Counted from the first letter of the stretch, positions 5,713-49,378 are shown. The stretch is DNA of 56,269 nt from Girardia tigrina (GCA_001938485.1 MQRK01192887.1:1-56269), one strand, 5' to 3'. Notes: a model not told the origin generated them from the letters alone. Program-made: numbers and translations.

Positions 5713-5807
5713 GTGATGAATATTTTACATTTGCTATGTTGAATTTGGTATGTTGAGTTTAGTATTTGGGAATGTGTTTCTCCCACCCAGATGGAAAATT
5801 GATATTT
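5713..5807 (+). promoter_or_regulatory. Conserved block A, module copy 1 (putative cis-regulatory)
   Basis: GTGATGAATATTT..(TATGTTGA)x2..GTGTTTCTCCCACCCAGATGGAAAATTGATATTT; homologous to four other copies; function inferred. Confidence 0.55.
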
Positions 5808-5966
5808 TAGATGTTCACGATAAATAATTATTCGAGTATAATTTGCATTTTAAATTATAGCATAAAATATTTTAAAAACTTTAAAAATAAAATCTGAAAA
5901 TAATGACAAATTGTTCAAATAATTGTTTATTAAAAAATATTAACTAAGATTTATCAATTTAGAACG

Positions 5967-6080
5967 ATGTCGAATGACGAAAGCTTTGCTGAGAGTTGTC
6001 CAAAGGACAATTCAAATTGTATTGAAAATAAATGTTCAAGAACCCGTATTGGTGTTCTTAACAACAATTATATAATCTAA
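5967..6080 (+). CDS. Short ORF family member 1 (37 aa, MSNDESFAESCPKDNSNCIENKCSRTRIGVLNNNYII)
   Basis: Gap-free codon alignment with four other copies, each downstream of a block A. Confidence 0.5.
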   Translation: MSNDESFAESCPKDNSNCIENKCSRTRIGVLNNNYII

Positions 6081-6438
6081 ATGGTGTACTAACTGCAGTC
6101 GTTTTAATGTTTTATTTATATATTATAATTTAAAGAAAGGCTGTCCCCAAATCCACGTTACTAAAGATTGATGTAGGATCAAATTTCGGCAAAAAATATA
6201 ATCTGACTGAAAAAAGAAAATTTTATAATTTACAAGTTATATTTTAATTATAGATATATTATTTTTTATTATATATATATATATATATATATTTTATATA
6301 AAATTAAATTAATAAATTCTAAATAATTAATCAAATAGTTTGTAAATCATTTGACTTATTTATTAATTGTTATCAAATTTTTTATCAAAAATTTTTCAGA
6401 TTTGCAGCTCAAACCGACACTGGACAGAGAGATAAATA

Positions 6439-6678
6439 TCATCTGTAAAATTTGTAGTAGACAAACAGACGATTAAAACTTATAAAAGTGAGGTAAAAAG
6501 AAACACAAATGAAACATTCATCTTTTCTTAGGACGTTCTTTTCTTTTAACCATTCTGGAGGATGCAGATCATTTCTACTCAGGCCGTTTCTCATCGGAGG
6601 TTTTTCCTCTAAAATTTCTCTTCCAACGTTCTTCCTCCTATTGTTTCTTATACGATTTTTTTTCTTTTGGTTTGACAT
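6439..6678 (-). other. Orphan protein-like ORF fragment (basic N-terminus MSNQKKKNRIRNNRRK...)
   Basis: GC-richer island with protein-like composition; no family recognised. Confidence 0.25.
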
Positions 6679-9600
6679 ATAAAAATACAAAATCAAAAAC
6701 TAAAATAAAAATCTTAATTTAAAATGAAAAACCTCAATACAAATTTTCTTAAAAATAAAATCCGTTTAAAAATATATGTTAGAAATTAAAATGAAATGTT
6801 AGGAAAATTTTTAAAATAAGGTTAAATTAAATAAGTACAAATTAAAATTTATATATATTTAAATATGTAAAGTTTGAAAAAGAAATTTCGTCTTACTTAT
6901 TTCGTAATTAAACTGTTAAGAATTAAAAATTTTTGACATAGTCTAAAATGTAATATACGAAGTAAAATGTGTAATTTTTAAATGTGTAACGATTTTTAAA
7001 AATTAATAAAATTAAACGAAACAATAATATATTTTAAAATGTTATCGTAATTTAAAATTGATTTATAAAATTAAAATAAAATGAAATATTATTATTATTA
7101 GTATTTTGTTTATATCTGATTAAGATTTATAAAACAAATTGTTTCTCAAATAATATAAGTTTGTTTAAATATTAGATTTCAACAATTTTTTTGTTGTGGA
7201 TAATAATAAAATTTGGATATCTGAAATAACTCTTAATACTTATTCTGAGGATGTTCCAAGAACATCTAATAATATAAATTTTAAAAAAATAAAATTAACA
7301 TATCCACCATTACATTTTATACGAAAATTACAATTTAATTACCAAAAAATTAATAAAAAATACCAAAGCTAAAGATTAATATAAAAATAAAATTTTACTA
7401 CTGAAAAATAATTTTGATTTGAAAATTTGAAATTGCTTTTAGATAATTTAGTCTCAAATATTTTTTTCGAATCTCAAAATCTTATGAAAAAAGTCAACAA
7501 CGCAAATCAAATTTTTGATGAAAAAATTGTCTTTCAGATAAAGTTTTTTTTTATGTTTATCATCACTCTGCTCAAATGATAAGGAAGACTCGCTCGTCTT
7601 TAAAATAATTTTCTAATATACATACAGCAATATACAGATATATACGGATTTCAGTGTTATATATTTGTCGATTTATTAAAAATTTAAAATTAAAAAAAAG
7701 CATTTCTACGAAAGCTATAGTTAGACTTACAAGATTTATTTTCTAAATAATGTTATTAATGACTATATGAAAAGTTTTTAAATTTTATAACTAATCAATA
7801 TTAAAACCAACTAATTTTTAATACAAATGCATATCTTTTTAAATTTTTTTTATTATTTTACCTGGTTTATTAAGCAGACAAATGAATAGCTAACTGGCCG
7901 AACAAACTATACAATCGTTCGATTCAAGATACACTGAATCCATAAAAAAATTTAAATGCATCCAATGTTTCATCCGATCTCCAGCTTACCCCAAATACCA
8001 GACAATGGTAACAGAGGCATGGTGCTCGTTACTTTCGTACTGGGTTCATTTTATATTTATGGTTTGACTGTTATTATTTTGGTTCGAGATCATGAGTCAG
8101 TAGCAATCAAAATCAAGAGCTTAACGTCTTTTAAAATTAAATTCATAGCATTCGTCCTAAATCATATCAAATTTACCAGTAAAAATTAAACAACTTCGTT
8201 GCTAATCATAAAAATAAATGTTCAAATAATAATTGTCTCAAGGTTCTTAACATACATAATTGTATTAAAAAGTTTCTAAAATATAAAATACATTTAAAGG
8301 CTGCAAGGAAATAAATGAATTAATTTTAATATTAAAAAGAAAAAATAAAACAATATTTTAACTTCAAAGCTTTAATAGTCATTGTGAGAGTAAATGATAA
8401 TAAATTGAGTAACAAATAATTAGTAATTGTTTTAATATTTGGAAACTTAGGCGGGAAATTTCAGTAGAGCTTAAGAATTGTGGAGTTAAATAAATTCTCA
8501 TTTATTATCGAACTTTGTCTTTTGATTTTGTCGCAACAGTTATCATAGTTTATAAACTAATTTAATTTTTGGTAACACCCTTGACCACTTTATATCATCT
8601 AAAATTGTTTTTTATCTATTAAATTCTTTTAATCATAAACTTTTCTTCTCAGGACGGAAATATCAAAAAATAAATACATTCATAAAATATGATGAGATAG
8701 AATAAATAAAATGTATTTTGTGTATATTAATACTGTAAAAACATTAAAAATTTAAGAAAAAATAATATAATATTAATAAAGAAATATAATTTTTTTATTT
8801 AAATTCTCATTTGCATTAACAAAATATGAAAATGTCAATTTAATTTTTATTATTTTGTTTTGAAAAAAAATTACACTTACTTTATAATTAATTTAAATTA
8901 ATTTCTTTTCGATTAAAATGAAACAAAAAACCAAATGATATTTTTATCATTTCATTATTTTCAAAATATTTTCAAATATTTCTTAGAAATTTGACATTGA
9001 ATAAAAATAATTTATTTTTTTTGCATTTTCTCAAGACGATTTTGAAAGACAAAAATACAGAATATCTTTAAAAAGTCTCAGTTCGTATAATTATTGAGCC
9101 TGGAGCTATGATAGCGAATTTTTATAATAATTAATATGAGTCAGAGAATATGTTGATAAATTCTTTTCAGGAATATCTCTAAATAAATAAAAATAAATAA
9201 ATAAAAACATTTCCCCATAAACTTCATTAATTTTAGATGACTTAGCGGAATGAAAAATAACAATTGATAGAATGTACCAAAAAATTATTTTTCATAATTT
9301 TGTATGATGGAGAAAAAAGAGTTATTTTTCTTCAGTAAATTTCGAAAGATAACTAAATTAATATTATATTTACTGAATGTTATCTTAGAAATAGTGCTTG
9401 GAATCCGGGACAATATTTCCATTCCAAAGATTTATTGTCTAATAAGAATCATTATTAGATTCTTATATTAGATTAATATTTTCGAAAAATTTTCCTCAAG
9501 CATAAAAGTAACAAATTAATCCTCTGTAAAAATACAAATATTTTACAAACACATTTTATATTAACATAATAATTTTGTAAACATAATTTTTTAAATTAAC

Positions 9601-10744
9601 GATCAAACACTTTTTAAGGATTCATGTTCAAATTTTTTAAGTTGAAAAACATTTTTCGACCTTAATGTATACCAAACTGTATTTATCAAAGGGGATAAAT
9701 TAAAGTTAGGGGATATGGTAAAGTTAGAAAATAATGACAAGCTATTTTTATAAATTTAAAAACTCCATTTTATAATAATATATTTTATTGCAATTTATTT
9801 TGACGGAATATCCCTTATTGTCAGGCACTTCTGATTCTAGCTGTCAAGCTTTTATATTTCCAATTGTGATTACGCAATTAATTATGTAATTACTGTCGCA
9901 TGCAAACACTCAATAAAGTTGATGAGTCATTGATTGTATTTTAATCGCTATATTAACTGCTTTAATTAATAATGCCTCACACGAGATTCATTCCCAATAA
10001 TTTTTATCGAGTTTCTTTATTAAAATTTTAAAATCATCATCATATTTTTTATGCAAACAAAAACAATTCTGGTATTCTCTACTATGATCAACAGAAATTA
10101 TGACATGATTATCGTTGAAGCATTATTAATTAAGTATTTTAAACCATAACTAAATTTGCTACGTAATTCTTCCATTGTATTAAAATATTTAGTATATTAA
10201 TACAAAAGCTAAAATTTGTAAATAACAAACTTAAAGTTTGATACAAAGATCATTTAAAAATGTTAGTCAGATTGTGTCAAGATTATAAAACTCTGCCTTT
10301 TAATAACTTTTGAAATATGTCTACGAAAATTCACTGACAAAAAAAAATGCAAAATGTGAATCTTAAAAATTATCTCATTCAGTGTTTCTAAATCGATGGT
10401 TCGCAAATTAATTTTTATTTTTTATATATTTTTAAGATCTTTTAGATTATGGTTTATTTTTTTAATTTATCTTTAATTCGGTCGAAACCTTTTCATCTGT
10501 TTCTAAGTTGTTTTTACAAAAAAATTTTCCCAGTTGTGATTATCTCATGATCACCTGAAATTAAATTTAAGGACTTCCAAAACGTTACTTTTCAAGAAAT
10601 TGATACAAATATGCCTTCTTCAATATGAAATCAAATTGTTATATTGATATTCAGGTTTTCTTTACTTCAGATTACATTATGTTTCATTTTTTAATCACTG
10701 AAAAGATAGTTTAAAAACGTTATATTCCTCGTTTGTTACGTTAT

Positions 10745-10920
10745 GTCAAAGGAAGAAAAGCTGCGCTTGCGAGTCGCATGCGGCTCTTCCGATGTAAAGT
10801 TACGGCTTTCCAGTTCCATACACATAAATTAAATATTTTATTATTCTAGCAGAAATATGTGATAAAAATTTTATAAGTTTTTACGTGAATAAATATTATT
10901 TCTTTAGGTTATTTATTTTA
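10745..10920. mobile_element. hAT (Charlie/SPIN-type) MITE end remnant
   Basis: GCGCTTGCGAGTCGCATGCGGCTCT resembles the typical GCGGCTCGCGAGCCGCATGCGGCTCT subterminal motif. Confidence 0.45.
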
Positions 10921-10921
10921 A

Positions 10922-10975
<54 letters not shown>

Positions 10976-11409
10976 NNNNNNNNNNNNNNNNNNNNNNNNN
11001 NNNNNNNNNNNNNNNNNNNNNNNNNTATATATATATATATATATATATAGTACCGGTCAAAAGTCTTGAGCCATCTAAAAATATTTCAAAATGTCACAAA
11101 TATATGCAAAATTATATAATCTGTTGAAATAAATTTAACATATTTTATAAACCAGATAATCCTGCATTATGTAATGGTATGGGTATTAAAAATATGTCCT
11201 GCTTTAAGATTCTAAATGATAAAATAAAATTGTTTAAATATTCTATTGGGTCAAAAGTTTTGAGCCACTTTCAAACTGTCGTTATAATTAAAATTTAAAA
11301 ATTGGTTTGTTTCAAAAGGATAAGTATGTTTTATGCCATAAATTATATTAATATATAAGTAGAAAATTACTAAAATATCTGAACTGAAAAGATAGTAATT
11401 GTTGATGCA

Positions 11410-12368
11410 ATGAAAAACAAGAAATCCCAAAGACAAATGGCAGAAGAATTTGGAGTTTCGCGAAGAAATGTACAGGAAATATATGAAAAATCTCTAAACA
11501 CTATGTCTGTAGTAGATAGGTACAGATCAGGCAGTCCTACAAAGACAACTCTACGAGAAAGATGTCATTTGATAATAATAAGCAAGAAAAAACCTTTTCA
11601 ATCTTCAACAATTCTTCAAAAAAAAGTGAATAAGTAGATTAACAATGTCTAATTCAACAGTCAAACGAATCTTACGACAATATGGTTTGTATAGACAAAA
11701 AGCTGTTTTGAAACCTCACTTAACAGCAAAGCAAATCAAAACGCAAAAACACTGTTGCCATCAGTATAGTATTTTAAGCGATAAATATTTCAAAAAAAAT
11801 ATGATTTATTTAAAGATTTATATAAAGATTTATTTATACCCAAACCGTCGTGTATATGTCAGAAGAAGCAGAAAACAACAATGTCACCCTAGGAATGTAA
11901 AGTCTTCAAAGACATTTGGAGGGAAATCTCTAATGATATTGGGATTCATTAAATTAGATGGTTCTCGTGTTTTGGTTAGAGGCAGCTATTATATGAATTC
12001 CACTGAATATATATATCACTACTGCAAAATGAACTTTTCCCAAATTTTTATTCCGACGAAATTTTTCAACAGGACGGTGATCCTTTTTATAGAAGTAAGC
12101 AATCAATAACATTTCTTGAAGAAAATGCAATCAACTACATTTGTGATTGGCCAGCACAAAGTCCTGATTTAAATGTAATTGAAAATATGTGGTATTATGT
12201 AAAACAGAAACTATATTTACTGAATTTAACAATATCAATGAACTTTAGATAAACTTTAAAAAAGAATTTTTCGAAGTCCCGAATGACTATATACGAAATT
12301 TATATGCTTCCTTTATGACAAGGATAAATGCTGTTTTAGCCGCTAATGGAGAAATAACAAAGTATTAA
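11410..12368 (+). pseudogene. Tc1-family transposase, frameshifted (second D to E spacing of 35)
   Basis: HTH region SQRQMAEEFGVSRRNV..RSGSP, then FQQDG...WPAQSPDLNVIENMW; several stops and frameshifts. Confidence 0.9.
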
Positions 12369-12576
12369 ATGAATTATTTTATTCATTATTCGAATAATAA
12401 ATGTTCTTCATGGTTTTCATTTTGTGATTTTGCACAAAATAATAAAAAAGTAAGAGTGGCTCCAGACTTTTGACCGCATTTGGCCATTTTGTGTTGCTGT
12501 GTTTGTGTATCGTATTTGATATTATTCTGATGGCTTCATCTGTAAATTGTGCTTCATATACAGTTTTTTCAACTTT

Positions 12577-13312: not shown

Positions 13313-14528
13313 TTAGGTTGTTCGATATGAAACGGGTCAAACTTCACACCTTACATTTCAATCGCGTATAACTTAACTTTGAACTATCGTATGAAAATAA
13401 ATAAGGTATTTCTTGACAGATATNNNNNNNNNNNNNNNNNNNNNNNNNNNNNNNNNNNNNNNNNNNNNNNNNNNNNNNNNNNNNNNNNNNNNNNNNNNNN
13501 NNNNNNNNNNNNNNNNNNNNNNNNNNNNNNNNNNNNNNNNNNNNNNNNNNNNNNNNNNNNNNNNNNNNNNNNNNNNNNNNNNNNNNNNNNNNNNNNNNNN
13601 NNNNNNNNNNNNNNNNNNNNNNNNNNNNNNNNNNNNNNNNNNNNNNNNNNNNNNNNNNNNNNNNNNNNNNNNNNNNNNNNNNNNNNNNNNNNNNNNNNNN
13701 NNNNNNNNNNNNNNNNNNNNNNNNNNNNNNNNNNNNNNNNNNNNNNNNNNNNNNNNNNNNNNNNNNNNNNNNNNNNNNNNNNNNNNNNNNNNNNNNNNNN
13801 NNNNNNNNNNNNNNNNNNNNNNNNNNNNNNNNNNNNNNNNNNNNNNNNNNNNNNNNNNNNNNNNNNNNNNNNNNNNNNNNNNNNNNNNNNNNNNNNNNNN
13901 NNNNNNNNNNNNNNNNNNNNNNNNNNNNNNNNNNNNNNNNNNNNNNNNNNNNNNNNNNNNNNNNNNNNNNNNNNNNNNNNNNNNNNNNNNNNNNNNNNNN
14001 NNNNNNNNNNNNNNNNNNNNNNNNNNNNNNNNNNNNNNNNNNNNNNNNNNNNNNNNNNNNNNNNNNNNNNNNNNNNNNNNNNNNNNNNNNNNNNNNNNNN
14101 NNNNNNNNNNNNNNNNNNNNNNNNNNNNNNNNNNNNNNNNNNNNNNNNNNNNNNNNNNNNNNNNNNNNNNNNNNNNNNNNNNNNNNNNNNNNNNNNNNNN
14201 NNNNNNNNNNNNNNNNNNNNNNNNNNNNNNNNNNNNNNNNNNNNNNNNNNNNNNNNNNNNNNNNNNNNNNNNNNNNNNNNNNNNNNNNNNNNNNNNNNNN
14301 NNNNNNNNNNNNNNNNNNNNNNNNNNNNNNNNNNNNNNNNNNNNNNNNNNNNNNNNNNNNNNNNNNNNNNNNNNNNNNNNNNNNNNNNNNNNNNNNNNNN
14401 NNNNNNNNNNNNNNNNNTGTGTTGACAACATGGGGGGATATTTTGATTAAAAATAAAATGTTATTATTTAAAAAAAATCGATTTACATTTTACTTTAATT
14501 TTGACCCGTTTCATATCGAACAACCTAA
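13313..14528 (+). mobile_element. Young mariner element (interior in assembly gap)
   Basis: Perfect 29-bp TIRs TTAGGTTGTTCGATATGAAACGGGTCAAA, TA on both sides, ~1.2 kb; mariner C-terminus CVDNMGGYFD* just after the gap. Confidence 0.92.
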
Positions 14529-15044: not shown

Positions 15045-15941
15045 TGGGACCTTTTCCTTCACCTGCCTCGGTGACGGTGCAATGAATAGGCCCGAGGCCG
15101 ACGTGAAAGAAAAACTCACTGGTCCCAACACTCGTGTACTGCGCATTTCTACCACTTTCTGTCATAACTTCAACACGTCATCTGCTTTAGCATTGAAACG
15201 GAGTAGAGCTCGAAAATTACCATCATTGTTCTCTGGTTCACTTTCTAGTGCAATGAGACCAGAATCTCGATGCCCCCTTAGCACCAAGCCTTGCCTTCCA
15301 CACAACAGAACTGTTTCGATGATTGGTACTAGACTTTTTCTGTTTTTTTTCATTTGACGTCTTGCCTCATTGTCAATCTGGAGAATGACCGGAAGCTGCT
15401 TACCAGACACTACTCTGCTAGCGTTTAAGGCAAATTCCGCACAGCGTATATGATACAGACACTTCTCGTGTGTAGAGAAGCGTTCACACGTATCTTTCCA
15501 GTTATCAAACGTCATTGTGCACAACTGTCCTAAAGGCTGACTTCCAGATACTCCGGCAACTGGATTGAAAAGTAAACAGAACTTACAAAATGCACCATCC
15601 TGAGAGGCTGAATACGCTAGCCACTTCCACTGATAGAGCCACTTCTGTTGAAAACCCATGTTCTTAGGTCCACTTGGTGGAAACTTAAATTGGGGCTCCG
15701 GAATCCATAGATTCTCCAACATTTCTACTTTCTTGGGATCAGTCATAATGGTGTTTGCCCACAGTCCAATGTCAGTGACAGGGAAAACTTGCATGTCATT
15801 AACACAGGTTGAATTGTGCATGTTTACAGAAGACACTTGACACACGGGAATAATAGGGACGATGGATTCCGTGTCATCCGACTTCCGGGGTATTTTTACG
15901 AAATAGTTCAGAAGAAATACACTTGGTCTCTTAGAGCTCAT
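15045..15941 (-). pseudogene. hAT transposase N-terminal half (ZMYM1/THAP12-like, TTF zinc finger plus DUF4371-like region), truncated
   Basis: FQQKWLYQWKWLAYSASQDGAFCKFCLLF and LRGHRDSG...NDGNFRALLRF motifs. Confidence 0.85.
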
Positions 15942-16074
15942 TCAGTTGTGTTATATATTTGTATTAGAAATTCCAAAATTCAATTCAATTTTTATCAAAA
16001 ACTTATATTTGATCCAAATTTATCACAAGCAAATTTATTTAAAAAAAACAATTTCCTTTTTTTACATAATAACT

Positions 16075-16183
16075 GTGAGGAATATTTTAAATTTGGTATG
16101 TTGAAATTGGTTTGTTGAATTTTGTATGTTGAGTTTAGTATTTGGAAATGTGTTTCTCCCATCCAGATGGAAAATTGATATTT
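16075..16183 (+). promoter_or_regulatory. Conserved block A, module copy 2
   Basis: GTGAGGAATATTT..three ~14-bp T(A/T)TGTTGA units..GTGTTTCTCCCATCCAGATGGAAAATTGATATTT. Confidence 0.55.
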
Positions 16184-16507
16184 TAGATGTTCACGATAAA
16201 TAATTATTCGAGTATAATTTACATTTTAAAGTACAGCATAAGATATTTAAAAACTTTAAGAATATTAAATCGTTTCAAATTTTCATATTAAAATTTAAAT
16301 AAAGTAAATAGTTTTAACTAAGTTTTGAATTAAATAAATGTTCTTTCTTTCCATAAAATAATTTTTTAATTTAAATTAATATGTAAATAAAATTATTACT
16401 AAAATTACAAAATTAGGACTTTAAAAATAAAATCTGAAAATAATGAAAAATTTGTTCGAATAGTTGTTTATTAAAAAATATTAACTAAAAGTTATCAATT
16501 TAGAACG

Positions 16508-16609
16508 ATGTCGAATTACGAAAGTTTTGCTGAGATTTGTCCATAAGACAATTCTAATTGTATTGAAAATAAAAGTTCGAAAACCCATGGTGATGTTCTT
16601 AATAATAAC
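16508..16609 (+). pseudogene. Short ORF family member 2, premature stop at codon 13 (MSNYESFAEICP*DNSNCIENKSSKTHGDVLNNN)
   Basis: Close paralogue of 5967-6080; TAA at 16544-16546 replaces AAG. Confidence 0.5.
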
Positions 16610-16711: not shown

Positions 16712-17156
16712 TTTCTGGTTGTCCAAGTGGAACAAAATGCCATAACACTGCAAAAATAAAGTGACGTAAAATGAGACAAAGAATGAGAAATGTATGTGTG
16801 TGTAGTCTGGAATGGAACAATTAACAAACTACGTGAAGTATTGAGACATGTTCTATCTACAGCCTTGTACCTATTAGCCGGCAGACTATACCGCACCATT
16901 ACGCAAGTGTGTGTTGTGACGAATAGATAGAGAGAAAGACAGGCAAGACTGAGCTCCCCACACCTCTGTCTATCTGGATACAGGTGAGGGTAGTACAAAT
17001 TAGAACTTGTATATTGTTAAGCCTATTTATATAAGGACAAATGCGTTGGAACAATAATGTTTTTATTGAAAAATGTTAAGCCAATTATTTTTTGACAACG
17101 TCAAGGNNNNNNNNTGGGGTTACAACCCCAAAACCCACCCCTTCCCTAAGCCACTG
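16712..17156 (-). mobile_element. Probable hAT terminal/subterminal region
   Basis: Ends ...CCCCTTCCCTAAGCCACTG (reverse complement CAGTGGC...), a typical hAT terminus; upstream of the hAT ORF on the same strand; small gap inside. Confidence 0.45.
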
Positions 17157-19820: not shown

Positions 19821-20502
19821 GCTTATGTAAAAGTACATATATTAATATTATACATATAATATATGTATATATAAATAATATATCAATATTTAATATTGAT
19901 TGAAAGTTTTAAATCCATTAATTACGGACTACAATTATATAATACTACCCATCAAGCATTTTCCTGTAAAACCGGCTCATAAAGGAATTTTACCGCAAAC
20001 CAACCTATCAATATTCCCCCTGAAGGTGCATCTCTCAGATAATCTATTTCCTCAAAATCTTGTCATGCAACCGAATAATTCTTTGACGTTCCCATCAATA
20101 TCGTTGCAACAGAAGATCGTTCTTTAGAAATCTTTGAACAATAGACACAAATCGAAACCGAAAATTATCCGTGCCATTCTCTCTCTCGTATGTGATTTTT
20201 TTTGTTATATATTGGTTGAAATAATTCACATCTTGATCGAACTTAAGCAGAATTAATTTAAGAAACATGTTTTTTTAAAAAGAAATTAAATAAAGTAATT
20301 AATTAGAAATTTTAGTTAAGTTAAAAATTTAAGTAAAATCAAAATTTAAATTTNNNNNNNNNNNNNNNNNNNNNNNNNNNNNNNNNNNNNNNNNNNNNNN
20401 NNNAATTTATATAATGTAAAAAGTTGGTTGTTTAAATAATAGCGGAATCACCGCACAATTTTTTAAAATAAAGTATTTCGTTTTCGATTGTTTTGAATTG
20501 AA

Positions 20503-23473: not shown

Positions 23474-26373
23474 CACGTTGTCGACCGGCAATTTTACGCC
23501 AAATCTATTGTAGGTAACCGACTATCTTTCCGAAATTCAATGTGGAAGTGAAAAAATATAAAGAACTTTCAATATAAGCCTCCTACGACTGCACGGATAA
23601 CTGTGTGTTTTAGAAACTACAGTACCAGCATTGGTGTACAGGGTAGTGAGTCATAGACTCTTTATCGGATAGAAACCAAAAAATAGACAATACAGAGCCC
23701 ACTGAATTTCTCTCACGGCCTTAGATGCAAGAATGCAAGCTTTTAGTAGACGGACACGCTTCGGTTTACCAGTCAGAAAGGACTAGTTATGATTCCTCGT
23801 ACTTTGATTCTATAGAGATTTATCTGTGTAAACACATTTTGTACAATGAGTAAAAGGACACCGAAATATCCCCACATCATTTGTATTATTTATTTGAAAG
23901 TCGAGAACCACCCGTTGAATCACTCTTTATTCCATCTCCGAGGTACCAACGATGGGCACTGACACATTGGGTTCGAAGATTTTGTACATCCTTCATCTAC
24001 GTTATTTTGTGAAGCTTTAATACCATTGGTACTGCCTTGGGTTCGATGATTGATTAATAAATGTCGCTTTAACCATCGATCCGTTTCATAGATCTTGTGA
24101 CAATTTCCCGTGGGACATTGGAAAAGTCTGTCACCATTCTGTAGCTGCGGTGTCGTAACCGTATGCATGTTTTTGATGTGTCTTCTTTGGTTCCTTCTGT
24201 TCCTCAAAAGCTTTGAAACAAGAAGAATACGTGCATTACACTCTTTTGATAGCGGCTGGAGAATTTTCAGTTTTTCAGACACAGTTCCTTTGATCATGTG
24301 TTTGAATTCCTCGTCACTGTCGAGAATTCCTCTCCCATTCAAGCATTCCTGGTATTCGACCAGATCTTCTTGGCCGCCAAGTAAACAGAGCATATCGCGG
24401 GCCATATGCACTTTCATCAACTGCTTTTTACGGTCGCTGAATTTTCTATTTCCTGAAGCCATTTCGGAGTTTAATACTCTTTCTACCTCACGTACACCTT
24501 TTCGTGTATTGTACTCAAAGAATACAATACGCCGTTTCACCAGTATCACACGCGCCTCGGACAAACCAATTTTACATATCCGTATTACATATTCTGCCAA
24601 GTTTAATTTTACCAAGATCAGTACGTGTGCAGGTATTATGAAGAGTTTGTAGCAGAGTTACCTCTTTTTCAGGTCTTGCCCAGCACTCACTCCCATAATA
24701 AACTGCCGGAAAAATGCTTGATTCGATTAGTCTTCTTTTCAGCGCTATAGGAACTCGGTTACTTTGAATTGCATACTGCAATTCTCGTAACTTACTCATT
24801 CCACAACGCAACCGCTGACCGATATCCCGACTGAAGCTACCACATGAAGTCAAAATACTGCCAAGATAACAAAACTCGCTCACCCATTCTATGACTTTGT
24901 CACCACCCATCACTTGCGATATTCCTGTCCTCGAGTCCTCAGTTAGGCACATAACTTTCGTTTTACATGCACTAATAGTCAACCCAAATTCTGAAAATGT
25001 GCTTCTAAGTACATCCAGGTTTTTATAGGCACCATCAAGATCAGAGTCGATAATACATAGATCATCTGCATAAGCAAGTCTATTGACTTGAAATTCGTCA
25101 CCATACTCGGCGATCAGGGTAATTCTTCGAACGAATCCTTTCAGTATCGCATTTTTGATGACTTCATCGAAGACCAAGTTAAAAAGACTAGGTTTGTTAC
25201 ACATCCCTGCCTGATACCTCTTTCCATGAGAAACTCACAATCTTCCATGGAATTCCTTGAACAGGTTGAGAATCTTGTAAGTCAAGTCAAATCTTTTCAT
25301 GCTGGCTCACAGAGCTTCACGCGGGGCACTATCAAATGCCTTTTCCAAATCGACGAATATCACAAATACTTTCTGGTTTGTATATCGACCTTCTTCCTGT
25401 ATCCGCCTGAGTATACTTATAGCTTGTATAGTTCCTCTTTTCGGCCGAAAACCGAACTGGGAAGGGTCTAACCTTTCTTCCATCACCGGCGTCATTCTAT
25501 TTACGATTATTCGTCCAAAGACTTTGTCGGTGACTTCCAAGAGGAAGATCCCTCCTTAATTATTCGGATTAGACCTAGTAAACTTTCCCTTGAAAAGTGT
25601 TACCACTTTTGCACTCCTCCAAGCCGTTGGGAACTGATGATCACCCCGTTCCAAATTACCTCTAAATCGAGCTTCAATCGAGCTCGCCCCATTATAAAAC
25701 CTCTGTAGTCACCCCATTTGAGTCGGATGCCTTCTCACTACTCATTTGTGAGCAATCGTATCATTATGGCAATCCGTAACTCTTCTGTGTTTGGTGGATC
25801 TATACCGATACAACTTTCATCAGGGAATCGAGTCATATCCGCCAACTCAATAAATGAACGCGCTTCGAAGAGCTTCTGTAATGACTTGCCATTTGATTAT
25901 TGGGAAACTGATGGCTCTAGCGTAAAAAGCGTATGCATTTTCGTTTCTGCATTCCCCAGCATATGCAATTCTAGATAAGCCACATCTTTCTGCTTGAGGG
26001 TTCTAACATTACTTAGATTGATCAGTCTATCTCGCTTCCATTTACAAATAGAACTAGTTACCTTATTTCGTGCGGCTCTCAAGCGTTGCAAATTTTCTGC
26101 AGAAGGTTGCAATATCCATTTTTTCTGTGGTGACTCTTTTCGTTTATGAGATGACATTGTTCAGTTTTGTGATCAGGTAACCAGCTTCCTTTTAGAGGTG
26201 TTATTTGACCTTCCAGTTCTTTTCCACTAGTGATGTAATAACTTTCTCTTTGTTTCAATAATTTTAACTTTCAATAATTTATTTGCAGTATTCTATATTT
26301 ATCTGGGTTTCATAACTTAAAATAGCTAATGCAAATGCAAAAACGAGTTAACTGGGGACCGGTAAACAATGTA
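23474..26373. mobile_element. piggyBac-like non-autonomous element interrupted by an RTE insertion
   Basis: TTAA-CACGTTGTCGACCGG ... CCGGTAAACAATGTA-TTAA: imperfect TIRs with TTAA on both sides. Confidence 0.5.
23600..26235 (-). mobile_element. RTE-like LINE, 5'-truncated and frameshifted, with C-terminal C2H2 zinc finger(s)
   Basis: QFGFRPKRGT, FVDLEKAFDS, LAYADD, FCYLGS, YGSECW and FQCPTGNCHKIYETDRWLKRHLLINH. Confidence 0.93.
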
Positions 26374-27034: not shown

Positions 27035-27169
27035 TTAAATTTTATTTATTATTAATAATAAAATATGGATATTATTAAGAAAACTAATTTGATTTTCAAT
27101 GCATTTATTGATATCACAATTTGAATTGCTACTCGGAGAATTCTCCATAAAACTTTCGTAACAAATCAT
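27035..27169 (-). CDS. Short ORF family member 3 (44 aa, MICYESFMENSPSSNSNCDINKCIENQISFLNNIHILLLIINKI)
   Basis: Gap-free alignment with member 1 (ESF.E..P..NSNC..NKC....I..LNN); about 205 bp downstream of block A copy 3. Confidence 0.5.
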   Translation of the reverse strand: MICYESFMENSPSSNSNCDINKCIENQISFLNNIHILLLIINKI

Positions 27170-27374
27170 CGTTCTTGATTGATAAATTTTAATTCTATTT
27201 CTAAACGTTTTATTATTTAAACAAATTTAAATTACAATTTAATAATTTTCATAATAATTTGAAATATTTTAAAAAATATTTTAAATATATTGTTTTTGAT
27301 AAATTAATTTAATTTAAAAGTTATTTATTTAAATTTTAAAATTGATTAAATAATCCGACGTTTTAAAATATTTA

Positions 27375-27463
27375 AAATATCAATCTTCCATTTGGTGGGA
27401 GAAACACAATCCTAAAACAACATACCAAACAACACACAATAAACACCATTCATAAATATTCCT

Positions 27464-27466
<3 letters not shown>
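27375..27466 (-). promoter_or_regulatory. Conserved block A, module copy 3
   Basis: Reverse complement TGAGGAATATTT..TGTTT/TGTTG tract..GTGTTTCTCCCACCAAATGGAAGATTGATATTT. Confidence 0.55.
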
Positions 27467-27503
<37 letters not shown>

Positions 27504-27839
27504 TCACAAAGAAATCGAATGACAGTAGTTTAGATAAAACTCTAAGCTTTTATGCTTTTTATATGGTCCACTATTTTGTAGATGATACATAGGTATTTTA
27601 CTATAGTATCAACCGAGAATCAACGGAATGCAGAAAACCGGGTGAGGTTCAGATCCAAAGACCAATGTCACTCATTCAATTGAAAGATAAAGATGTCAAT
27701 ATTTTGGGATTTCAAGTGTCTTTAATTTATGAACACAGGTAAGAAATGAGTTCCATTCCAGTTTACTAAACCCCATTGCGTGATGCTTTCAAAGTGAAAA
27801 GACAAGGAAAGTTGACAAATGACTTACGTCTTCTCTTTG

Positions 27840-29737: not shown

Positions 29738-30060
29738 TTAAACTTGTTGACGTGAGCTTTTCAATTGAATCCGAGTATTCTTCGAATTTTTTCTCAATCC
29801 CTCTGAGATCTTCGTTGATTTCGTCAACATCATCGAACCTTCCGAGCTTCGTTCCGATTTCTTTGAGGGATTCCAAGTTGGATCTATTGATTCAATTTTA
29901 AATGTCTTCAATTGAACTGAAATCAAGACTTCATCAATCAATGTTTCAACACTCTCCAGAAAATCTTTTACATCAAACGAAACATTCAGGTTTTCTAAGG
30001 ACATGTCGATTTCATTGATTTCTAATTTGATTTCCATTTCAATTTTATTTGATTTTCTCC
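29738..30060 (-). pseudogene. Unidentified gene fragment inside the fold-back (MEIKLEINEIDMSLENLNVSFDVKDFLESVETLIDE...)
   Basis: Acidic, helical protein-like part of ORF 29738..30361. Confidence 0.35.
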
Positions 30061-30158
30061 ACTTTGAAAAGAATATATAATCATAAAAGTAATCACAAAA
30101 GGCAGTAATGTTAGATTGAATATAACAAATTATTTGTTGAGATCCTTTTTGTTGATGG

Positions 30159-30374
30159 ATGAAGACGCTGATGGATATCAATAATGAAATCGTAGAAATT
30201 GCTCGTTCTGTAAGTAAGAACTGGCTGCTGTTGGAAAGGCAATTGTATTTCAAGAAATCTATACACGACTCGGGTAACCGCAAAATAAAACTCCAAAGTC
30301 TCTCTAGCAAGTCGAAGTGGAGGAAGTACCGACATGATTCTGTAGTGGTTATTACTAACAAAAAAGGTTCATAA
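30159..30374 (+). pseudogene. Death-domain-like fragment
   Basis: EIVEIARSVSKNWLLLERQLYF...KWRK resembles death-domain helices 1-2 (IA..G..W..L.R.L); runs into the inverted-repeat arm. Confidence 0.4.
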
Positions 30375-32875: not shown

Positions 32876-32989
32876 TCAATCATCTACTGAGATTCGAGTA
32901 ATGAAAATATTAACATTTAAACATTTATTATTATTACAAATAGAACTATCATTACAAAAATTCTTCAAATCACTTTCACTATACGTTAT
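32876..32989 (-). CDS. Short ORF family member 4, most divergent, ATA at the start position (ITYSESDLKNFCNDSSICNNNKCLNVNIFITRISVDD)
   Basis: ES, D, C and NKC at exactly the same codon positions as member 1, same length (37 codons); preceded by TCCAG-AAAG. Confidence 0.4.
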   Translation of the reverse strand: MTYSESDLKNFCNDSSICNNNKCLNVNIFITRISVDD

Positions 32990-33241
32990 CTTTCTGGATT
33001 AATATTTTTCTGTAGATCATTCTTCTTTTGAAAACAAATGGAAAATATTTGTAATATTAATTAATTATCAAAACTCTCATTGGTTAAAATCAAATTTAAA
33101 CATTTTTTTAAAAAAGATGCACCAATTAAATTAATACATTAAAATTTTAAATTACATTAAAAGTTAAATATTTCATCTGCAACATATATTAAATATTTGT
33201 AATTTAAAATAAAATAATTTTCAAATAGTAAGAATCAAAGA

Positions 33242-33337
33242 AAATACCAATCATCCATCTGGGTACGAAAGACACAATCTGAATCAACACACAACATTCA
33301 AATGATAAAGTAACAAAAAATTCAGTAGATTCCTCAC
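33242..33337 (-). promoter_or_regulatory. Conserved block A, module copy 4
   Basis: Reverse complement GTGAGGAATC..TGTTGTGTGTTGA..GTGTCTTTCGTACCCAGATGGATGATTGGTATTT. Confidence 0.55.
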
Positions 33338-33781
33338 CGATAAATACAAATATCATTATAAAAACTTTTTTATTAATTGTAAAATTAAATACTTCAAGAT
33401 AACAGTATTGGAAAATCGTTAGACTTTTAAATTCCTTCTTTGAATTATCTGTTACTAATTTGAGTTAGAATTCATCCATCCGCATTATCATCGATGTAAT
33501 GCATTTAGATCTAACCTTATACAAGTGGGAATTAAATAAAATAAAATAATGTTAATTCAAATTTATAGAAGAAGTTGTGACATCTCTCCAAAGAATATGT
33601 GTTATGGAATTAATATAAGAAATAAATAATAATAATTTGTGTAGGATATAAATAAATTATTTTATTAATAAAGATAAAACGAAGATATTTCTCGTATATA
33701 CCAATAGATTTAATCCTAAATCTATCCGAATGGGACTTAATGTAATAAATCTTTATAATTAAAGTTATCGTTTTTCTTTAA

Positions 33782-34789
33782 CACATTGTAATCGGATCAC
33801 GTATTAATACGTTTTTAGCAAATTAATGCTAGAGAGCGGATCACGTATTTATACATTTTTGATAGATTGTTAGTGGAGCGCGGGTCACGTTAAAATACGG
33901 GTTCCAATATACTTGAGTTTTCGCTATATAGCGTCTGTAGGGTTGTACCCATGCAGATAAAAACCTTTTGAGAACAATAGATGGGGTGTACGATGGGTAC
34001 CGAGGTAGTGTTATTCATCACAAAAATAGTCGAATATAACGGTACATATAACGGTCTACATGCAACACTAAGACGAAGAATAATATTTTTTTTAGTTTAT
34101 TTCACTACTCTTTGGTGGTCGGACGTTGCTAAAAGCTAAATATCGAGTACATAGATATTATATATATTACGTACATGGACTTCCGATTCGATTCATGAAG
34201 AAGTTATTTCTGAAGATCCAGGGCCATCGACATCTTCATGGAAAAGGGCTCCTTCTCGTGACCCTCCCGGAAGGTTTTCCATGGACATGCGCAAACATGT
34301 GATAGCCAAAATTGAAAGCAAGGGAAAGAAGAAATTTGTTCAAAGGCAATGTCATGTCTGTTCAGCGCGCAAGGTACGTAGTGAAACATGCTTCATATGC
34401 AAATTTTGTGAAATTCCCCTACACAGGGGCAAATGTTTTGAAAGATATCACACCCTAAAACAATACTAATTTTTATTTTACATTTAGAAATAATTTTTGT
34501 GTATAATTTGTAAAATAAAGGATGTGATGTAAAAAAAATATGATTTTTTTCAAAACTTTCCTACTTTATGTGAAATTCTGCACTAGTTTAACGATGAAGA
34601 AGACATTTCTAAATATAATAAAATAAAATGTAATAAAATAAATAATTTGCAAAAAGAATTATTGAAATCAAACAAATATTTTTGAAGTTATCGCAATTTT
34701 TCTAGAGGTCTACGTTAGCGCGAAATTACGCGAAAAATCACCCATTACCAGCACTAGTACGCGGCCGAAAACTGCCCGATCACAATGTG
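33782..34789 (+). mobile_element. Non-autonomous piggyBac element retaining the C-terminal Cys-rich domain
   Basis: TTAA TSDs, TIR CACATTGT(A/G)ATCGG, ORF ...RQCHVCSARKVRSETCFICKFCEIPLHRGKCFERYH. Confidence 0.93.
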
Positions 34790-36566: not shown

Positions 36567-37957
36567 ACTGATTATGTTCTTTTTTATTGCTTTTATATAA
36601 GAAATGAAAGCTTATGTAATCACTTACGTAAGTCTAATCGAAAACTCTTAACAAATTAGTTGAGAGTGCTGTTTGAACATTGATTTTAGGATCACATGAT
36701 CTTATCAACAATGCTTCACATGACACTCTCTCCTAATAATTTTTAAAATACTTGCACAAAATCTTAAAATCATTTATGCTCATATTACATTTACACTTTT
36801 TTATTTATGCTCAGCAATATTACTCTTTCCCCCTTTTTGACTGTGTTCTTGGACTCGTTTGCAGAGATGACGGGCAGACTCTCCGATGTATGTGGCATTG
36901 CATCCATTACATGTGTATTGATAAACAATGTCCGAACACAATCCTAAAGGAGTATGTGATTTATTGCAAAACATATTTTCAACTTTAAATGATTGAGATA
37001 TAATTTTTAAATTTAAAATGTTATCTGTTGATTTGAAGATCGAATTCTTGAGGTGTTTAAAACCCTTGGAGTAAGGTAAGCTTAGAGTATACCAAGGTAT
37101 AAAGCAGTTTTCAATGTTTAAACTATTATTTTTTTCATTTTTGATTTTTTCTTTTTTGATTATTTTATCTACAGTCTCACGAGTGAATCAGTCTATGATG
37201 GACTTAGAGTAACCGTTATTATTCAATAACTTGCTCAATGTATGAATACTTTTAATAGATTTTGAAAACGTGGAAGAAAGAGACCAAGAGCGGTATAACA
37301 AACCTTTGATCATATTCCTTTTATATTAAAACTCACAAAAACTGTTTATGGAGGTGTACGAACCTGTATCAGTTTTCTTTCGATATATTTCAGTTTCATA
37401 ATGATCATTTTTCCTTTCAATTAACAAATCAAGGAATGGTAATTTTCCGTTTATTTCCTGTTCTAGTGTAAAGATTATATTTGGATGAATCGAATTCATG
37501 TAATCTAGAAAAGGAAACACATGTTCTCGAGATTTAAAGACTAGAAAGATATCATCCACATATCTCTTATAAAGTAGTGGTTTTTTCCCCAAAAACAATT
37601 CTATTTTTTCTTCAATGGAAGAAAGAAATATAGAGGCTAACGTCGGAACCAATGGTGAACCCATTGCAACCCCATCAAGAACACAGTCAAAAAGGGAGAA
37701 AGAGTAATATTGCTGAGCATAAAAAACGAGTAAATGTAATATGAGCATAAATGATTTTCAGATTTTGTGCAAGCATTTTAAAAATTATTAGGAGAGAGTG
37801 TCATGTGAAGTATTGTTGATAAGATCATGTGATCCTAAAATCAATGTTCAAACAGCACTGTCAACTAATTTGTTGAGAGTTTTCAATTAGACTTACGCAA
37901 GTGATTACATAATCATTCATTTCTTATATAAAAGCAATAAAAAAGAACATAATCAGT

Positions 37958-42600: not shown

Positions 42601-42811
42601 TCTGACTGCGCTCCAAGCGGTTTCAAGTCATTTCAAAGTAAGGAAGATAAGTACGAATCTAAAGCACACTTTTTTGATACCCATGGATTTCAATTTTCCG
42701 TGGGTTGTATCAACACTGATGTTGAGCTTCTTTAAACGCATTTTCATGGTAATTCGACGCTATTCTTGGACCATCTTCTTAAATTTTTTATTTAGTTTGG
42801 GTTCGATCATC
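42601..42811. repeat. Identical 211-bp direct copy of 41321-41531 (mariner fragment)
   Basis: Base-for-base identity by inspection. Confidence 0.95.
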
Positions 42812-45800: not shown

Positions 45801-46829
45801 TTATTAAAATATTTTTTTTACAATATATATATTTCATTTATTATTTATTTACATTAAAAAGCGCAAATTATTTTTTTTTAAAATAGAAAAGAATTTAAAT
45901 TATAAATTAATATAAAGTACAGAAAAAACATTTTAAACATAAAATTAATAAAAGTAGAAACAATATAAAAGTAAATAAAATAATATTTTATTTGATAGAA
46001 ACATCAATAAATTATTTTTTTGGGATATTGGAAAAATATTTTTTATTAATATTTATTTTAAATGATTATTAAGTTTTTAATTAATGATTTAATTAAATTT
46101 TAACATCTAAAAATCAATATTATTTTTTGAAAAAACATAATCGACATTAATCCATTAAAAATTATTGTAAATTTTATAATATAAAATTTAATTGAAAATC
46201 AATAGGAAAAAATGTCAAAATATTGATTGATGTTTTATTTTATTTATTAATTTATTTCAAAGATTTGTCTCATTTATTTAATTTATGAGAATAGATTGTC
46301 AATAGTAAATTGTTAATTGAATTAATTTTTAATTGAATTTTATTTGTTGTTTTGAAATCGGATCTGACATTGATCTACCGATCGTTATTATTTTGTTTTA
46401 ATTATTTATCACATTATGATTTTTCTTTTTCAATTTATTTTCATTCTATTTTTATAATTTATTGTATTGTCTGATTAAATTAATTGTTTTAAATATTGAA
46501 CATTTTTGAGTTTTTTGGGGAAAAAAATATTTAATATTTTAAACTTATTTAATATTAAAGAAAGAAATTATTGATGACAGTGATATTTAATTTAATTTTT
46601 CGATATTTAATTTAATTAATTTAAAGATTGCAGATTTGATTTAATGGAAAATATTCAAGAATTCCTGTGAGTACAGACGATTTGACACTAATTTATCAAT
46701 TGAGATTTTAATGTCCGGTGTAGAAAATATAAAAAAAATAAAATTATAAATCATAAATTATGAAAAAAAATCAAAAATACAAATATATATAAAAATAATA
46801 TTTGAAATAGTTTTAAAATAAATTCAAGC

Positions 46830-47272
46830 CACTTTCCGATTTCATAATTTATTACGTGCTATCACTAAATATGGCTTTCGAAACGTTACCTGTATCGTGT
46901 TTGTAAGGGTTTATAAAATTCAATTAAATATTGCATTCAGAACGTTCAAAAGTTTCAATGAAAATAACCTATCGGGCACTTAAAGGATTGTTTTTTGTAA
47001 ATGACTTTTATGATTTTTATATTCGAAAATTAATTTTTGAATATTTTGGTATCATTATCATTACCGCCATGTTTTTTCTCCTCTAGTGCCCCTGTAGCTC
47101 GTCGGCTAAAGTAGATGATGTCAACTGATATTTTGCTATATTATTGACGTATTTTTGAGATAGTTAAATCTAAATTTTATTACAGTTTATAATAAAAAAA
47201 TAAATAGCCCAGCGAATTTTCGTTTTTTTGTAATGTGGCCCCCAAGTGGTCATAATTTAGACACTTATGGTT
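46830..47272. mobile_element. Degenerate hAT/Charlie-type MITE remnant
   Basis: Ends AATGTGGCCCCCAAG...TTTAGACACTTATG, resembling the ATGTGGCCC...TTGAGACCCCTG terminus. Confidence 0.35.
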
Positions 47273-47805
47273 TAGATCGTAATGATTGATACTCATGTAT
47301 ATTTACAAACTTCAAATATTGAAGGGTAACAATTTGGTTTGATAGGGTTAAAGGCTGTAAAATTTAATTTGAATGATTTTACTTTCTACAAAGTTTTAAT
47401 TTTACACATTTTTAAAAAATTACCTGATCAATTATTAAAATGGAATAGTTTTAATAAACATGTTCATTATTTACATCACTTTTACACAGCTGATCTAAAT
47501 ATTCCCAATATAACTTGCTTTTTACTTAAATATACCAAACCCTTTATTAAGTATGAAACCCATTGCTAAATAATTTCTCGAACGATAACCCTTATCGATT
47601 GTTCTCCGGAATCTTTTCACAGAAACTACGGAAAGGACGAGGAACAAGACAAGGTTGTGGAAGTAACTGATTTTATTTGGCAAAAATAATTTTTGAATTT
47701 ATATTAACAATATTTACATATATCTAACACATTTACAATTTTATTGTATATATANNNNNNNNNNNNNNNNNNNNNNNNNNNNNNNNNNNNNNNNNNNNNN
47801 NNNNN

Positions 47806-47840
<35 letters not shown>

Positions 47841-48930
47841 AAATACATGAAACAAGTTAGGAGTGTTAACTTTCAAATGAAAAGAGAATCTAATCTTTTA
47901 TAATTTTACTTCCTCAAATTTATATTACATGAAAAAAATGTAATTTGGAAAAAACTGTTTTACTTCACAATAATTATTATAATATGTTTCATCAAGAAAA
48001 GTTAACGCCCTCTATTCAGCACTTACATTAAGTGATTTTACATTGATTGTTTGATAAAATTCCAATTTTTTATTTGTATACATATTTTTCAGATTACTTA
48101 ATACGAAAAAGTTTCCATTTTATAATAATAAATAACTTCAAGAAGTTTTATTTTGAATAAATATTTGAAATGCGTCTTTTACTTTAAAAAATTGCATAAG
48201 AGTTTACAACGTTTTAGTTTGACTTTCAATACACAATGCGGGTCTTACAACAAATTATTCAACAATTGTTTACTTAATTGTTATTATTTTTTGGAATTTC
48301 CACAATCATTTTTCTAATATTTCTTTTATTAAAATGTTTTCCTTTAAAATTTTTTTAAAAATTTCTTCCTTTTAAATCATTATAAAAATAATCATATCAG
48401 AAATATTTCAATTATTAGGGTTTCCGTTTTAATCTTTAAAGATATTTTTTTTAAAAAATCTTTAACTAATTTTTTCATTTTGATTTTATATTCTTATAAA
48501 TTTGCATGTTTATAATAATTTTTCAATAATAAAATTTAAAATATTTTCAACCATAAAATATTTCAATTTTATAATCTATAAAACATGAATTTTTTACTGT
48601 AAAATTTCTTCAGTTATATTTTAATGTGTTAAATATTTTCAAATTCTCTTGATAGATTGTAAATATTCAAATTTAAAAAATTATGTGAACTCCCTAAAAT
48701 CCTAACAGTTAATTTACTTTGCAAGTTTGTTGAGGCTTAAAAAACTCTATGGCAATTTTATACTATTATCCTAATCAATAATCTTTTATAAATTTTCAAG
48801 AAAAACTCATCTAAATATTTAAATTATAATCACTGAGTAATAATAACGACCATAAATGTTTCATATTCTAGACATGTTTGCATTAGTTCAAGTAAATGTG
48901 ATTGGTTAACATTAATAATTAACCACAGAA

Positions 48931-49041
48931 TCATATACATTCGCTATTAAGAACACCAATTTGACTTTTCATATTTTTATTTAAACAGTAATTTTGATTG
49001 TCCTTAAGAAAATTTTTGTCAAAGCTTTCGTGCGTTTGCAT
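48931..49041 (-). CDS. Short ORF family member 5 (36 aa, MQTHESFDKNFLKDNQNYCLNKNMKSQIGVLNSECI)
   Basis: Gap-free alignment with member 1 (M...ESF, KDN.N, NK, IGVLN); about 240 bp downstream of block A copy 5. Confidence 0.5.
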   Translation of the reverse strand: MQTHESFDKNFLKDNQNYCLNKNMKSQIGVLNSECI

Positions 49042-49283
49042 TCTAAACTAAATTGATTAATGAATTAATTCTTGTTATTTTTTTAACAAATGGGGAAATA
49101 AATATTTTAATAAAATATTTACTAAAAACTTATTGGATAGAAATTAAAATGATTATTAATTATTTAAAAATATTAATTTGATTTAATTATTAAAAATTGT
49201 AAAAAAACTAAATAACTTATTTAAAATTTTAAAATTATTTGAAATTAAAAATAAATTTAAACATTTTTAGATAATAAGAATTC

Positions 49284-49378
49284 AAATATCAATCATCCAT
49301 CTGGGTAGGAGAGACACATTTCCAAATCAACATACTACATTCAAACACAAAACATCAAACATTCAAAATATTCCTCAC
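49284..49378 (-). promoter_or_regulatory. Conserved block A, module copy 5
   Basis: Reverse complement GTGAGGAATATTT..TGTTTGA..TATGTTGA..GTGTCTCTCCTACCCAGATGGATGATTGATATTT. Confidence 0.55.

Follow-up and report, generated by a model that had tools for sequence, protein, structure and literature searches.

The module and its copies in the window

The window analysed here is a 56,269-nucleotide stretch of the Girardia tigrina genome (GCA_001938485.1, MQRK01192887.1:1-56269), taken at its full length, with positions counted from its first letter. It contains five copies, c1 to c5, of a two-part module, in which a conserved block A is followed by an AT-rich spacer and a conserved block B, always in this order. 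All five lie where the original prediction, made from the sequence alone, had placed them. The copies are 61–95% alike in their aligned parts.

BLASTN links the copies both via block A (c4/c5, E = 7e-21; c1/c5, E = 3e-12) and via block B (c1/c3, c1/c5 and c2/c3). Profile hidden Markov models of the two blocks find exactly five places each in the window, always paired, the next best match having E > 1; as the profiles were made from the same five copies, this chiefly shows that there are no further or solo copies in the window. Two degenerate patterns, one from each block, match four of the five copies each and none of 100 shuffled sequences. Measured against shuffles, blocks A and B are alike in nearly every pair of copies (z about 5–17), the lowest value being that of block B in c4/c5 (z 1.7). 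The spacers are not alike, except those of c1/c2 (z 15) and c4/c5 (z 5.3). The spacer had been described as about 160–325 bp long and poorly conserved except between the first two copies. It is indeed AT-rich (9–16% G+C in the window copies) and similar in c1 and c2, but its measured length is 137–302 nt, and c4 and c5 are weakly alike too. The similarity of the 150-nt flanks of the window copies does not exceed that of shuffles. Thus the two islands do keep their order, strand and rough spacing, and between old copies they are more conserved than the spacer.

Copy c1 occupies positions 5691-6063 of the plus strand (about 373 nt). Its leader, with the box ACATAAT, is followed by block A (5713-5806, the nhmmer envelope), the spacer and block B (5944-6067), the latter with AATAAA at 6027-6032 and an intact short frame of 37 aa at 5967-6080. 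The c1 spacer is about 165 nt shorter than those of c2 and of L005, a copy from outside the window, as this segment is missing in c1.

Copy c2 (16055-16604, plus strand, about 550 nt) has one additional short GT-rich repeat unit in block A (16075-16182) compared to c1. In its block B (16485-16609) the short frame is broken by one in-frame stop. The identity of c1 and c2 is 94–95% in block A and the spacer and 86% in block B.

The other three copies are on the minus strand. Copy c3 spans 27073-27498 (about 426 nt), with a profile match to block A at 27376-27465 and block B at 27068-27190; the short frame is intact (27035-27169, 44 aa), and AATAAA is at 27104-27109. Its leader contains a (TA)n microsatellite, about 27467-27510, between the TATA-like motif and block A. 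The most diverged copy is c4 (32893-33372, about 480 nt), with block A at 33243-33337 (profile match) and block B at 32890-33012, in which the short frame has no start codon. The c4 leader contains TTTTTATAAT, common to the external copy L008. Copy c5 (48945-49405, about 461 nt) is 88% identical to the external copy L003 over 343 nt of the spacer and block B. Block A of c5, again a profile match, is at 49285-49378 and block B at 48942-49061, with an intact short frame of 36 aa (48931-49041) and AATAAA at 48976-48981.

Structure of the unit

The 3' boundary is sharp: in all 12 known copies, the five in the window and the seven described below, homology is lost after CTTAATA, and there is nothing common beyond it. 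CTTAATA is followed by 0–4 further TAA-like bases, and the resulting tail is 5–10 nt long and variable in length, from TAATA to TAATAATAA. At the 5' side, readable in six copies, homology begins with a TATA-like box some 35 nt ahead of TGAGGAAT. The extent proposed originally is therefore largely right but slightly too short, as the homology continues for about 35 nt upstream of TGAGGAAT and includes this box. The box is ACATAAT in c1, c2 and c5, TATAAT in c4 and TATAAAA in L008, whereas c3 has CATATAT at this position, followed by the (TA)n run. In five of the six full copies, c3 being the exception, the box precedes TGAGGAAT, where strong conservation starts, by 11–24 nt.

Block A is about 95–110 nt long. 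Short GT-rich repeats, three or four per copy, make up one part of it, and the other is a core of about 35 nt with strong conservation. The middle of the unit is hypervariable, with 85–91% A+T, and changes by slippage and deletion. The dinucleotide AG precedes block B in 10 of 12 copies. Block B, about 125 nt, has 21 invariant columns; the only invariant run longer than three columns is AATAAA, present in all 12 copies. It is followed after 17–19 nt by CA, then by a GT-rich stretch and the end of the unit. Block B had been claimed to align without gaps, and there are indeed none over 99 nt from the ATG position in any of the 12 copies.

Judged by these motifs, the module has the appearance of a small transcription unit, as had been proposed: a TATA-like box, an invariant AATAAA, CA and a GT-rich stretch, after which conservation stops. 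At face value it would resemble a complete small unit of RNA polymerase II (pol II), from the promoter to the downstream element of the poly(A) site.

At its end, block A lacks a conserved GT donor: the dinucleotide there is AT in four of the five window copies, and candidate GTs are at differing places. Splice models combining GTATGT in block A with CAG in the same block or with AG before block B were dropped, since they imply a first intron of only 35–43 nt, there is no AG in c3, and the stretch with the best conservation would fall in an intron. A block A resembling a spliced leader or small nuclear RNA (GT followed by an ATTTGG motif) has no support from Rfam, and the motif is not kept in c3 and c4. 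Folding z-scores of blocks A and B are about zero or positive, with no stable or covarying fold, and a candidate helix, the 9-bp inverted repeat in block B of L003 and c5, shows no covariation. Finally, downstream exons or a larger repeat unit were rejected, as neither the six-frame all-against-all comparison nor BLASTN of the 2.5-kb flanks revealed anything shared between copies.

The window contains runs of N at 525-574, 4087-4801, 10976-11025, 13424-14417, 17107-17114, 20354-20403, 47755-47805, 49836-49957 and 55963-56012. None is inside a copy, the closest being more than 400 nt away. The five copies are spread over four gap-bounded pieces, and only c3 and c4 share one (20404-47754), hence the spacing and relative orientation of the other copies depend on scaffolding. 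In the assembly the copies are 6–16 kb apart, with fragments of transposable elements (TEs) in between. The suggested convergence of plus- and minus-strand copies on the 17–27 kb interval does not hold as an observation, because it rests on scaffolding across gaps. A further explanation would be promoters of precursors of PIWI-interacting RNAs (piRNAs) or of other long transcripts in a TE graveyard, block A being the promoter and the rest not a product. The TE-rich setting and the occurrence of copies on both strands agree with such promoters. Against them, block B is no less conserved than block A and has a sharp end, although a mere promoter would require neither; nothing is shared downstream, and the convergence depends on scaffolding. 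We consider this explanation very improbable.

Copies outside the window

An exhaustive profile search of 1.84 billion protein representatives matched six small predicted proteins. Their contigs, short ones from metagenomes and from the Sequence Read Archive (SRA), carry seven further copies of the module, bringing the total to 12. L003 (JGI 3300037309) contains the spacer and block B, the part similar to c5, without block A. L004 (JGI 3300013315) has block B at the contig start, followed by a fragment of a hAT element; the end of this contig, about 930-995, resembles a sequencing adapter. L005 (Logan SRR13496040) retains the spacer and block B and is about 72% identical to c2. The remaining three contigs come from one sample, JGI 3300033082. 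In L006, a 1-kb contig, there are two convergent copies, 427-541 on the plus strand and 789-909 on the minus strand, 250 nt apart, and these tail-to-tail neighbours are members of different subfamilies. The same contig has at about 140-160 a reversed match to the first 11–12 nt of block A. L008 contains a full unit.

L007 has the spacer and block B, and the hAT element on this contig ends exactly where the homology to c3 begins. This complete-looking element (193-2806), inserted in the module spacer, encodes DUF4371, RNase-like and hAT dimerisation domains in two adjoining open reading frames (ORFs); its terminal repeat is palindromic and rich in G+C. Hence the 5' part of L007 is missing due to a nested insertion, and the same may hold for L003 and L006. 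The blocks, assumed to be always paired, are so within the window but not outside it, as L003, L006 and L007 demonstrate.

The 12 copies form three or four subfamilies: c1, c2 and L005; c3, L007 and the minus-strand copy of L006; c5, L003, L004 and the plus-strand copy of L006, with L008 nearby; and c4. Several subfamilies co-occur in the window and, likewise, in sample 3300033082.

Other searches yielded no further copies. The three intact peptides (c1, c3, c5) had no match in a word-based protein search, a second word search with nine peptides added no relatives, and an exact look-up of the window ORFs found none on record. The DNA patterns had no matches in viral contigs. In scans of metagenome contigs, neither the A nor the B pattern matched, and the JGI copies were missed there as they differ at fixed pattern positions. 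A scan of bacterial and archaeal genomes produced two chance matches of the A pattern (L001, 7240-7266, and L002, 4739-4765); both are inside an orthologous protein-coding gene of two Methanovirga genome bins, with no further likeness to the module, and were discarded. A 21-kb ENA locus with a related hAT (L009) has no module.

The short frame

The original prediction included a conserved short ORF in block B and, as one of its two interpretations, a family of micropeptide genes, in which this frame of 36–44 aa would be translated and its product selected. The frame is intact in three of the five window copies (c1, c3, c5) and broken in c2 and c4. It is open for at least 33 codons in c1, c3, c5 and six external copies, while the base composition predicts about 9% stops, and it contains no indels. 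However, the external copies were located via their ORFs, a way of searching that in itself selects for intact frames. Six copies were recovered independently of the ORF, and the frame is broken in half of them: in c2, in c4 and in the L006 copy on the minus strand, the latter lacking a start codon and having one in-frame stop.

The substitutions provide no codon-position signature either. Differences are distributed evenly over the three codon positions: their numbers are 78/93/78 among the old window copies, and the corresponding counts within subfamilies of the 12 copies are 93/108/95. The ratio of nonsynonymous to synonymous differences (pN/pS) is 0.58–0.93 for the short frame, no different from that of two control frames (0.45–1.16). 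The only invariant residues are M1, N21 and K22, and the last two are the AATAAA hexamer. Positions of cysteines are not kept, and the tails past the shared part are unrelated in length and sequence, the products ranging from 36 to 126 aa. None of the products matches Pfam. Judged by these comparisons, the short frame is not coding and the module is not a micropeptide gene; we retain only a very small probability for that interpretation.

Divergence, flanks and the nature of the module

The copies have discrete shared ends and unrelated flanks, fall into subfamilies, include broken frames and lack coding constraint. The flanks are unrelated even in young pairs: c1/c2 (about 93% identity), c5/L003 (88%) and c3/L007 (about 85%). 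Sharp ends shared by copies with unrelated flanks give the module the appearance of a dispersed or mobile repeat. Further, segmental duplicates of such age would still share their flanks, and hence the unrelated flanks count for mobility. Simple repeat decay had been set aside originally in favour of selection; with sharp common ends and unrelated flanks even at 85–93% identity, this rejection is not supported.

Within subfamilies, the substitution divergence, calculated from pooled per-pair counts, is about 16–18% both in the spacer and in block B. In c1/c2 it is uneven, 5–6% in block A and the spacer and 14% in block B. As the spacer and block B are equally diverged within subfamilies, the contrast between conserved blocks and a diverged spacer arises between subfamilies, and selection on each copy, as had been suggested, is not supported. 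Survival of the blocks only between subfamilies is expected if just the source copies are selected for their ends.

Our preferred interpretation is that the module is a non-coding dispersed repeat of about 0.37–0.55 kb with pol II-like signals, unclassified on the hallmarks tested, and most likely a non-autonomous mobile, or copy-and-paste, element. The probability we assign to it is about 0.45, and thus it is ranked first, a family of small long non-coding RNA (lncRNA) genes being second. The co-occurrence of subfamilies also favours it, as do the TE-rich surroundings, including the hAT insertion in L007 and the hAT fragment that L004 adjoins. If it is a dispersed repeat, both blocks would be cis-acting ends, needed by the source copies for transcription and/or for recognition and copying, and this need would keep the blocks alike across subfamilies. 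New copies would arise by transposition or retroposition with the enzymes of an autonomous partner, and copies that have landed would decay without detectable constraint.

Several observations weigh against this interpretation. Searches for terminal inverted repeats (TIRs) and subterminal inverted repeats were empty, the best inverted matches between heads and tails being no better than in shuffles, and LTR-type ends (LTR, long terminal repeat) and poly(A) tails are absent by reading; the lack of TIRs, LTRs and poly(A) tails had been noticed in the original prediction. Nor do the copies have a pol III head or coding capacity. ARAGORN detects no tRNA in the window, and Rfam 15 yields no family in the window at the gathering score and no match overlapping a copy at E up to 10. 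Direct repeats of 7–9 nt occur near the ends of c1, c2 and c5. However, repeats as good as these occur in 29% of random site pairs, the c2 repeat on the 5' side falls inside the c1/c2 homology, and comparison of own and cross flanks (the 3' flank against leaders) gives p = 0.08. Target-site duplications are not above chance. The position of the signals is also unfavourable: the TATA-like box is at the 5' edge of the unit and the GT-rich stretch past AATAAA is at its 3' edge, whereas a retroposed pol II transcript would carry neither.

A further point against it is that indels, frequent in the spacers, are completely lacking over 99 nt of block B in all 12 copies. The G+C content of block B also exceeds that of the spacer, and some constraint could therefore be masked by the equal substitution divergence. 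Just seven copies were detected outside the window in very large protein-based collections. Local clustering (five copies in 56 kb; two within 250 nt in L006) equally fits a gene cluster, and gene conversion could yield young pairs in which homology stops at the unit edges.

If the module is a dispersed repeat, the family should be included in repeat libraries; otherwise its short frames and conserved blocks could be taken for genes or regulatory elements. The absence of every standard transposon hallmark would then make it a small classification puzzle.

Comparison with known classes of elements

The module copies have no consistent terminal inverted repeats, as would be seen in miniature inverted-repeat transposable elements, and no pol III head (tRNA, 5S or 7SL) characteristic of short interspersed elements (SINEs) is recognised in them by ARAGORN or Rfam. 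Direct reading shows runs of four or more T inside block A, and such runs would stop pol III.

Retroposons that depend on long interspersed elements (LINEs) are either SINE-like or made of the two ends of a LINE. The module resembles them in the fixed 3' end with a short variable TAA-like tail, in the plan of a variable body between two conserved parts, for the promoter at the 5' side and for recognition at the 3' side, and in the existence of subfamilies. Some external copies (L003, L006) also lack the 5' part. It differs in having no pol III head, no poly(A) and no flanking direct repeats above the chance level. No LINE in the window shares block B, as assessed by the profile search.

HINE/DINE-1 elements, non-autonomous Helentrons, have subterminal inverted repeats of 12–15 bp, a short 3' palindrome and T-rich insertion sites (PMC4067079). 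Like the module, they are non-coding dispersed units of similar size with defined boundaries and conserved ends around a variable, repeat-prone centre, and are hard to classify. They also produce no target-site duplication, and the duplications at the module are not above chance. Three full copies out of six (c2, c4, L008) have a T-run immediately on their 5' side. On the other hand, the module has no 12–15-bp subterminal inverted repeats, the 3' palindrome is present in c1 only, and the 3' flanks are not T-rich: their first bases are A, G, T or C, and there is no T-run.

The module could also be a solo LTR or another terminal piece of a larger TE, left by recombination or deletion. The size of 0.37–0.55 kb, the TATA-like box and AATAAA would suit an LTR, and so would the TG with which the strongly conserved part begins. 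Copy c2 is only about 130 nt from the start of the ORF of a hAT transposase. However, the unit ends with CTTAATA rather than CA and is not flanked by a 4–6-bp duplication. The TATA-like box at the extreme 5' edge would leave almost no U3. None of the 12 copies runs into retroelement or transposase sequence common to another copy. The hAT element of L007 ends in its own terminal repeat within the spacer, which makes it a nested insertion that does not form a single element with the module, and in the part that was compared the hAT proteins beside c2 and in L007 are not alike. The same terminal repeat rules out the module as a hAT terminus. On balance, we regard an origin from the end of a larger TE as improbable.

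Possible small pol II RNA genes and the aphid Ya family

In the second interpretation, the copies are small pol II genes for non-coding RNAs, forming a family specific to their lineage and analogous to the Ya lncRNAs of aphids. The TATA-like box would drive a transcript starting from block A, the spacer would be an intron or be retained, and block B would supply the 3' end-processing signals. The short frame would be incidental, as it is in Ya. Pseudogenes would be numerous among the copies, and neighbours would stay similar owing to gene conversion. The signals at both edges of the unit suit such a gene: the box 11–24 nt before the strongly conserved part in five of six full copies, and AATAAA in all 12, with CA after 17–19 nt and a GT-rich stretch before conservation ends. 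So do the AG before block B in 10 of 12 copies and the block B that is free of indels over 99 nt in all 12. Further, the copies are clustered, there are few of them in very large collections, and the uneven c1/c2 divergence (5–6% in block A and the spacer vs 14% in block B) fits a mosaic produced by conversion.

The precedent is provided by the aphid genes (PMC7293609; 10.1101/2025.09.25.678037). These are 357–403 nt long, with three exons and a dispensable ORF of 38 aa; they are clustered, found on both strands, and were long unannotated. They are less than 1 kb apart, often in outward-facing pairs, 85–99% alike, polyadenylated, and expressed in the salivary glands (PMC7293609; 10.1101/2025.09.25.678037). 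The module likewise is a unit of a few hundred nucleotides in which poorly conserved DNA separates the conserved parts. It has a short frame, about 38 aa in length and kept in many members, occurs in several copies per region on both strands, and escapes standard annotation. The hAT fragment of the window is also most similar to aphid and phylloxera sequences.

At the level of sequence no likeness to Myzus persicae Ya transcripts was observed. The conserved strings of the module are absent from the M. persicae rows of the alignment (supplement 10, 10.1101/813964) that were compared by reading; in these rows, the G+C content of Ya is much higher and the Ya ORF bears no relation to the module frame. 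With up to three mismatches allowed, the window contains no match to 30 nt taken from the Ya ORF region. The structure appears to differ as well: the module has no demonstrable GT-AG intron, in particular no GT donor conserved where block A ends, and no third conserved part downstream. The window copies are 6–16 kb apart amid TE debris, vs less than 1 kb for Ya, and the sole close pair of modules, that in L006, is convergent, with 250 nt between its members. Conserved RNA structure was not found, constraint on block B relative to the spacer is not detectable at the level of copies, and the flanks of young pairs are unrelated, which also speaks against genes.

A family of small lncRNA genes is the main rival, although we consider it less probable than a dispersed repeat. 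Its most specific form is somewhat more doubtful: the copies would be functional, constituting a second, sequence-unrelated family of the Ya type in a sap-feeding or related insect lineage, each with its own TATA promoter and poly(A) signal within about 0.45 kb, and the family evolving in a TE-rich region by birth and death with gene conversion. By analogy, the module may work like a Ya gene, yet it is not a member of the Ya family. If it is an RNA gene family, the compact clustered lncRNA gene of the Ya type is not a one-off, and the module would provide a second family for asking about the role of such RNAs.

Mobile elements and other features of the window

The window contains about 25% G+C, and its longer ORFs are fragments of mobile elements only. 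Reverse-transcriptase pieces are found on the minus strand at 3-254, 24575-25234 and 37329-37757, a Tc3-type helix-turn-helix at 11645-12109, and a piggyBac-type zinc finger at 34155-34466. The transposase near c2 is the N-terminal part (259 aa) of a hAT/DUF4371 protein of the TTF zinc-finger type, at 15162-15941 on the minus strand, beside a gap of 994 N. Its closest named relatives are aphid and phylloxera proteins with 45–60% identity. Judged by the sequence, the source would probably be a hemipteran-like arthropod and is certainly not human, given the low G+C content and the insect-type TEs. TE debris, as the surroundings had been characterised originally, is a fair description.

Several other repeats are seen in the window. 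At the very end, a 257-bp stretch is repeated with 99% identity (55703-55959/56013-56269) on either side of the gap 55963-56012 and looks like an uncollapsed overlap of two contig ends. An exact direct repeat of 211 bp (41321-41531/42601-42811), 1.07 kb apart, is situated where the window is richest in G+C. An LTR pair, a local duplication and an effect of the assembly are all conceivable as its origin. An inverted repeat with 94% identity (36492-36851/37676-38032) lies among the reverse-transcriptase fragments. Another one, 98–99% identical (28751-29214/30360-31289), is between c3 and c4. It encloses an ORF of 207 aa (29738-30361, minus strand) with no Pfam match and looks like a foldback or long-TIR element.

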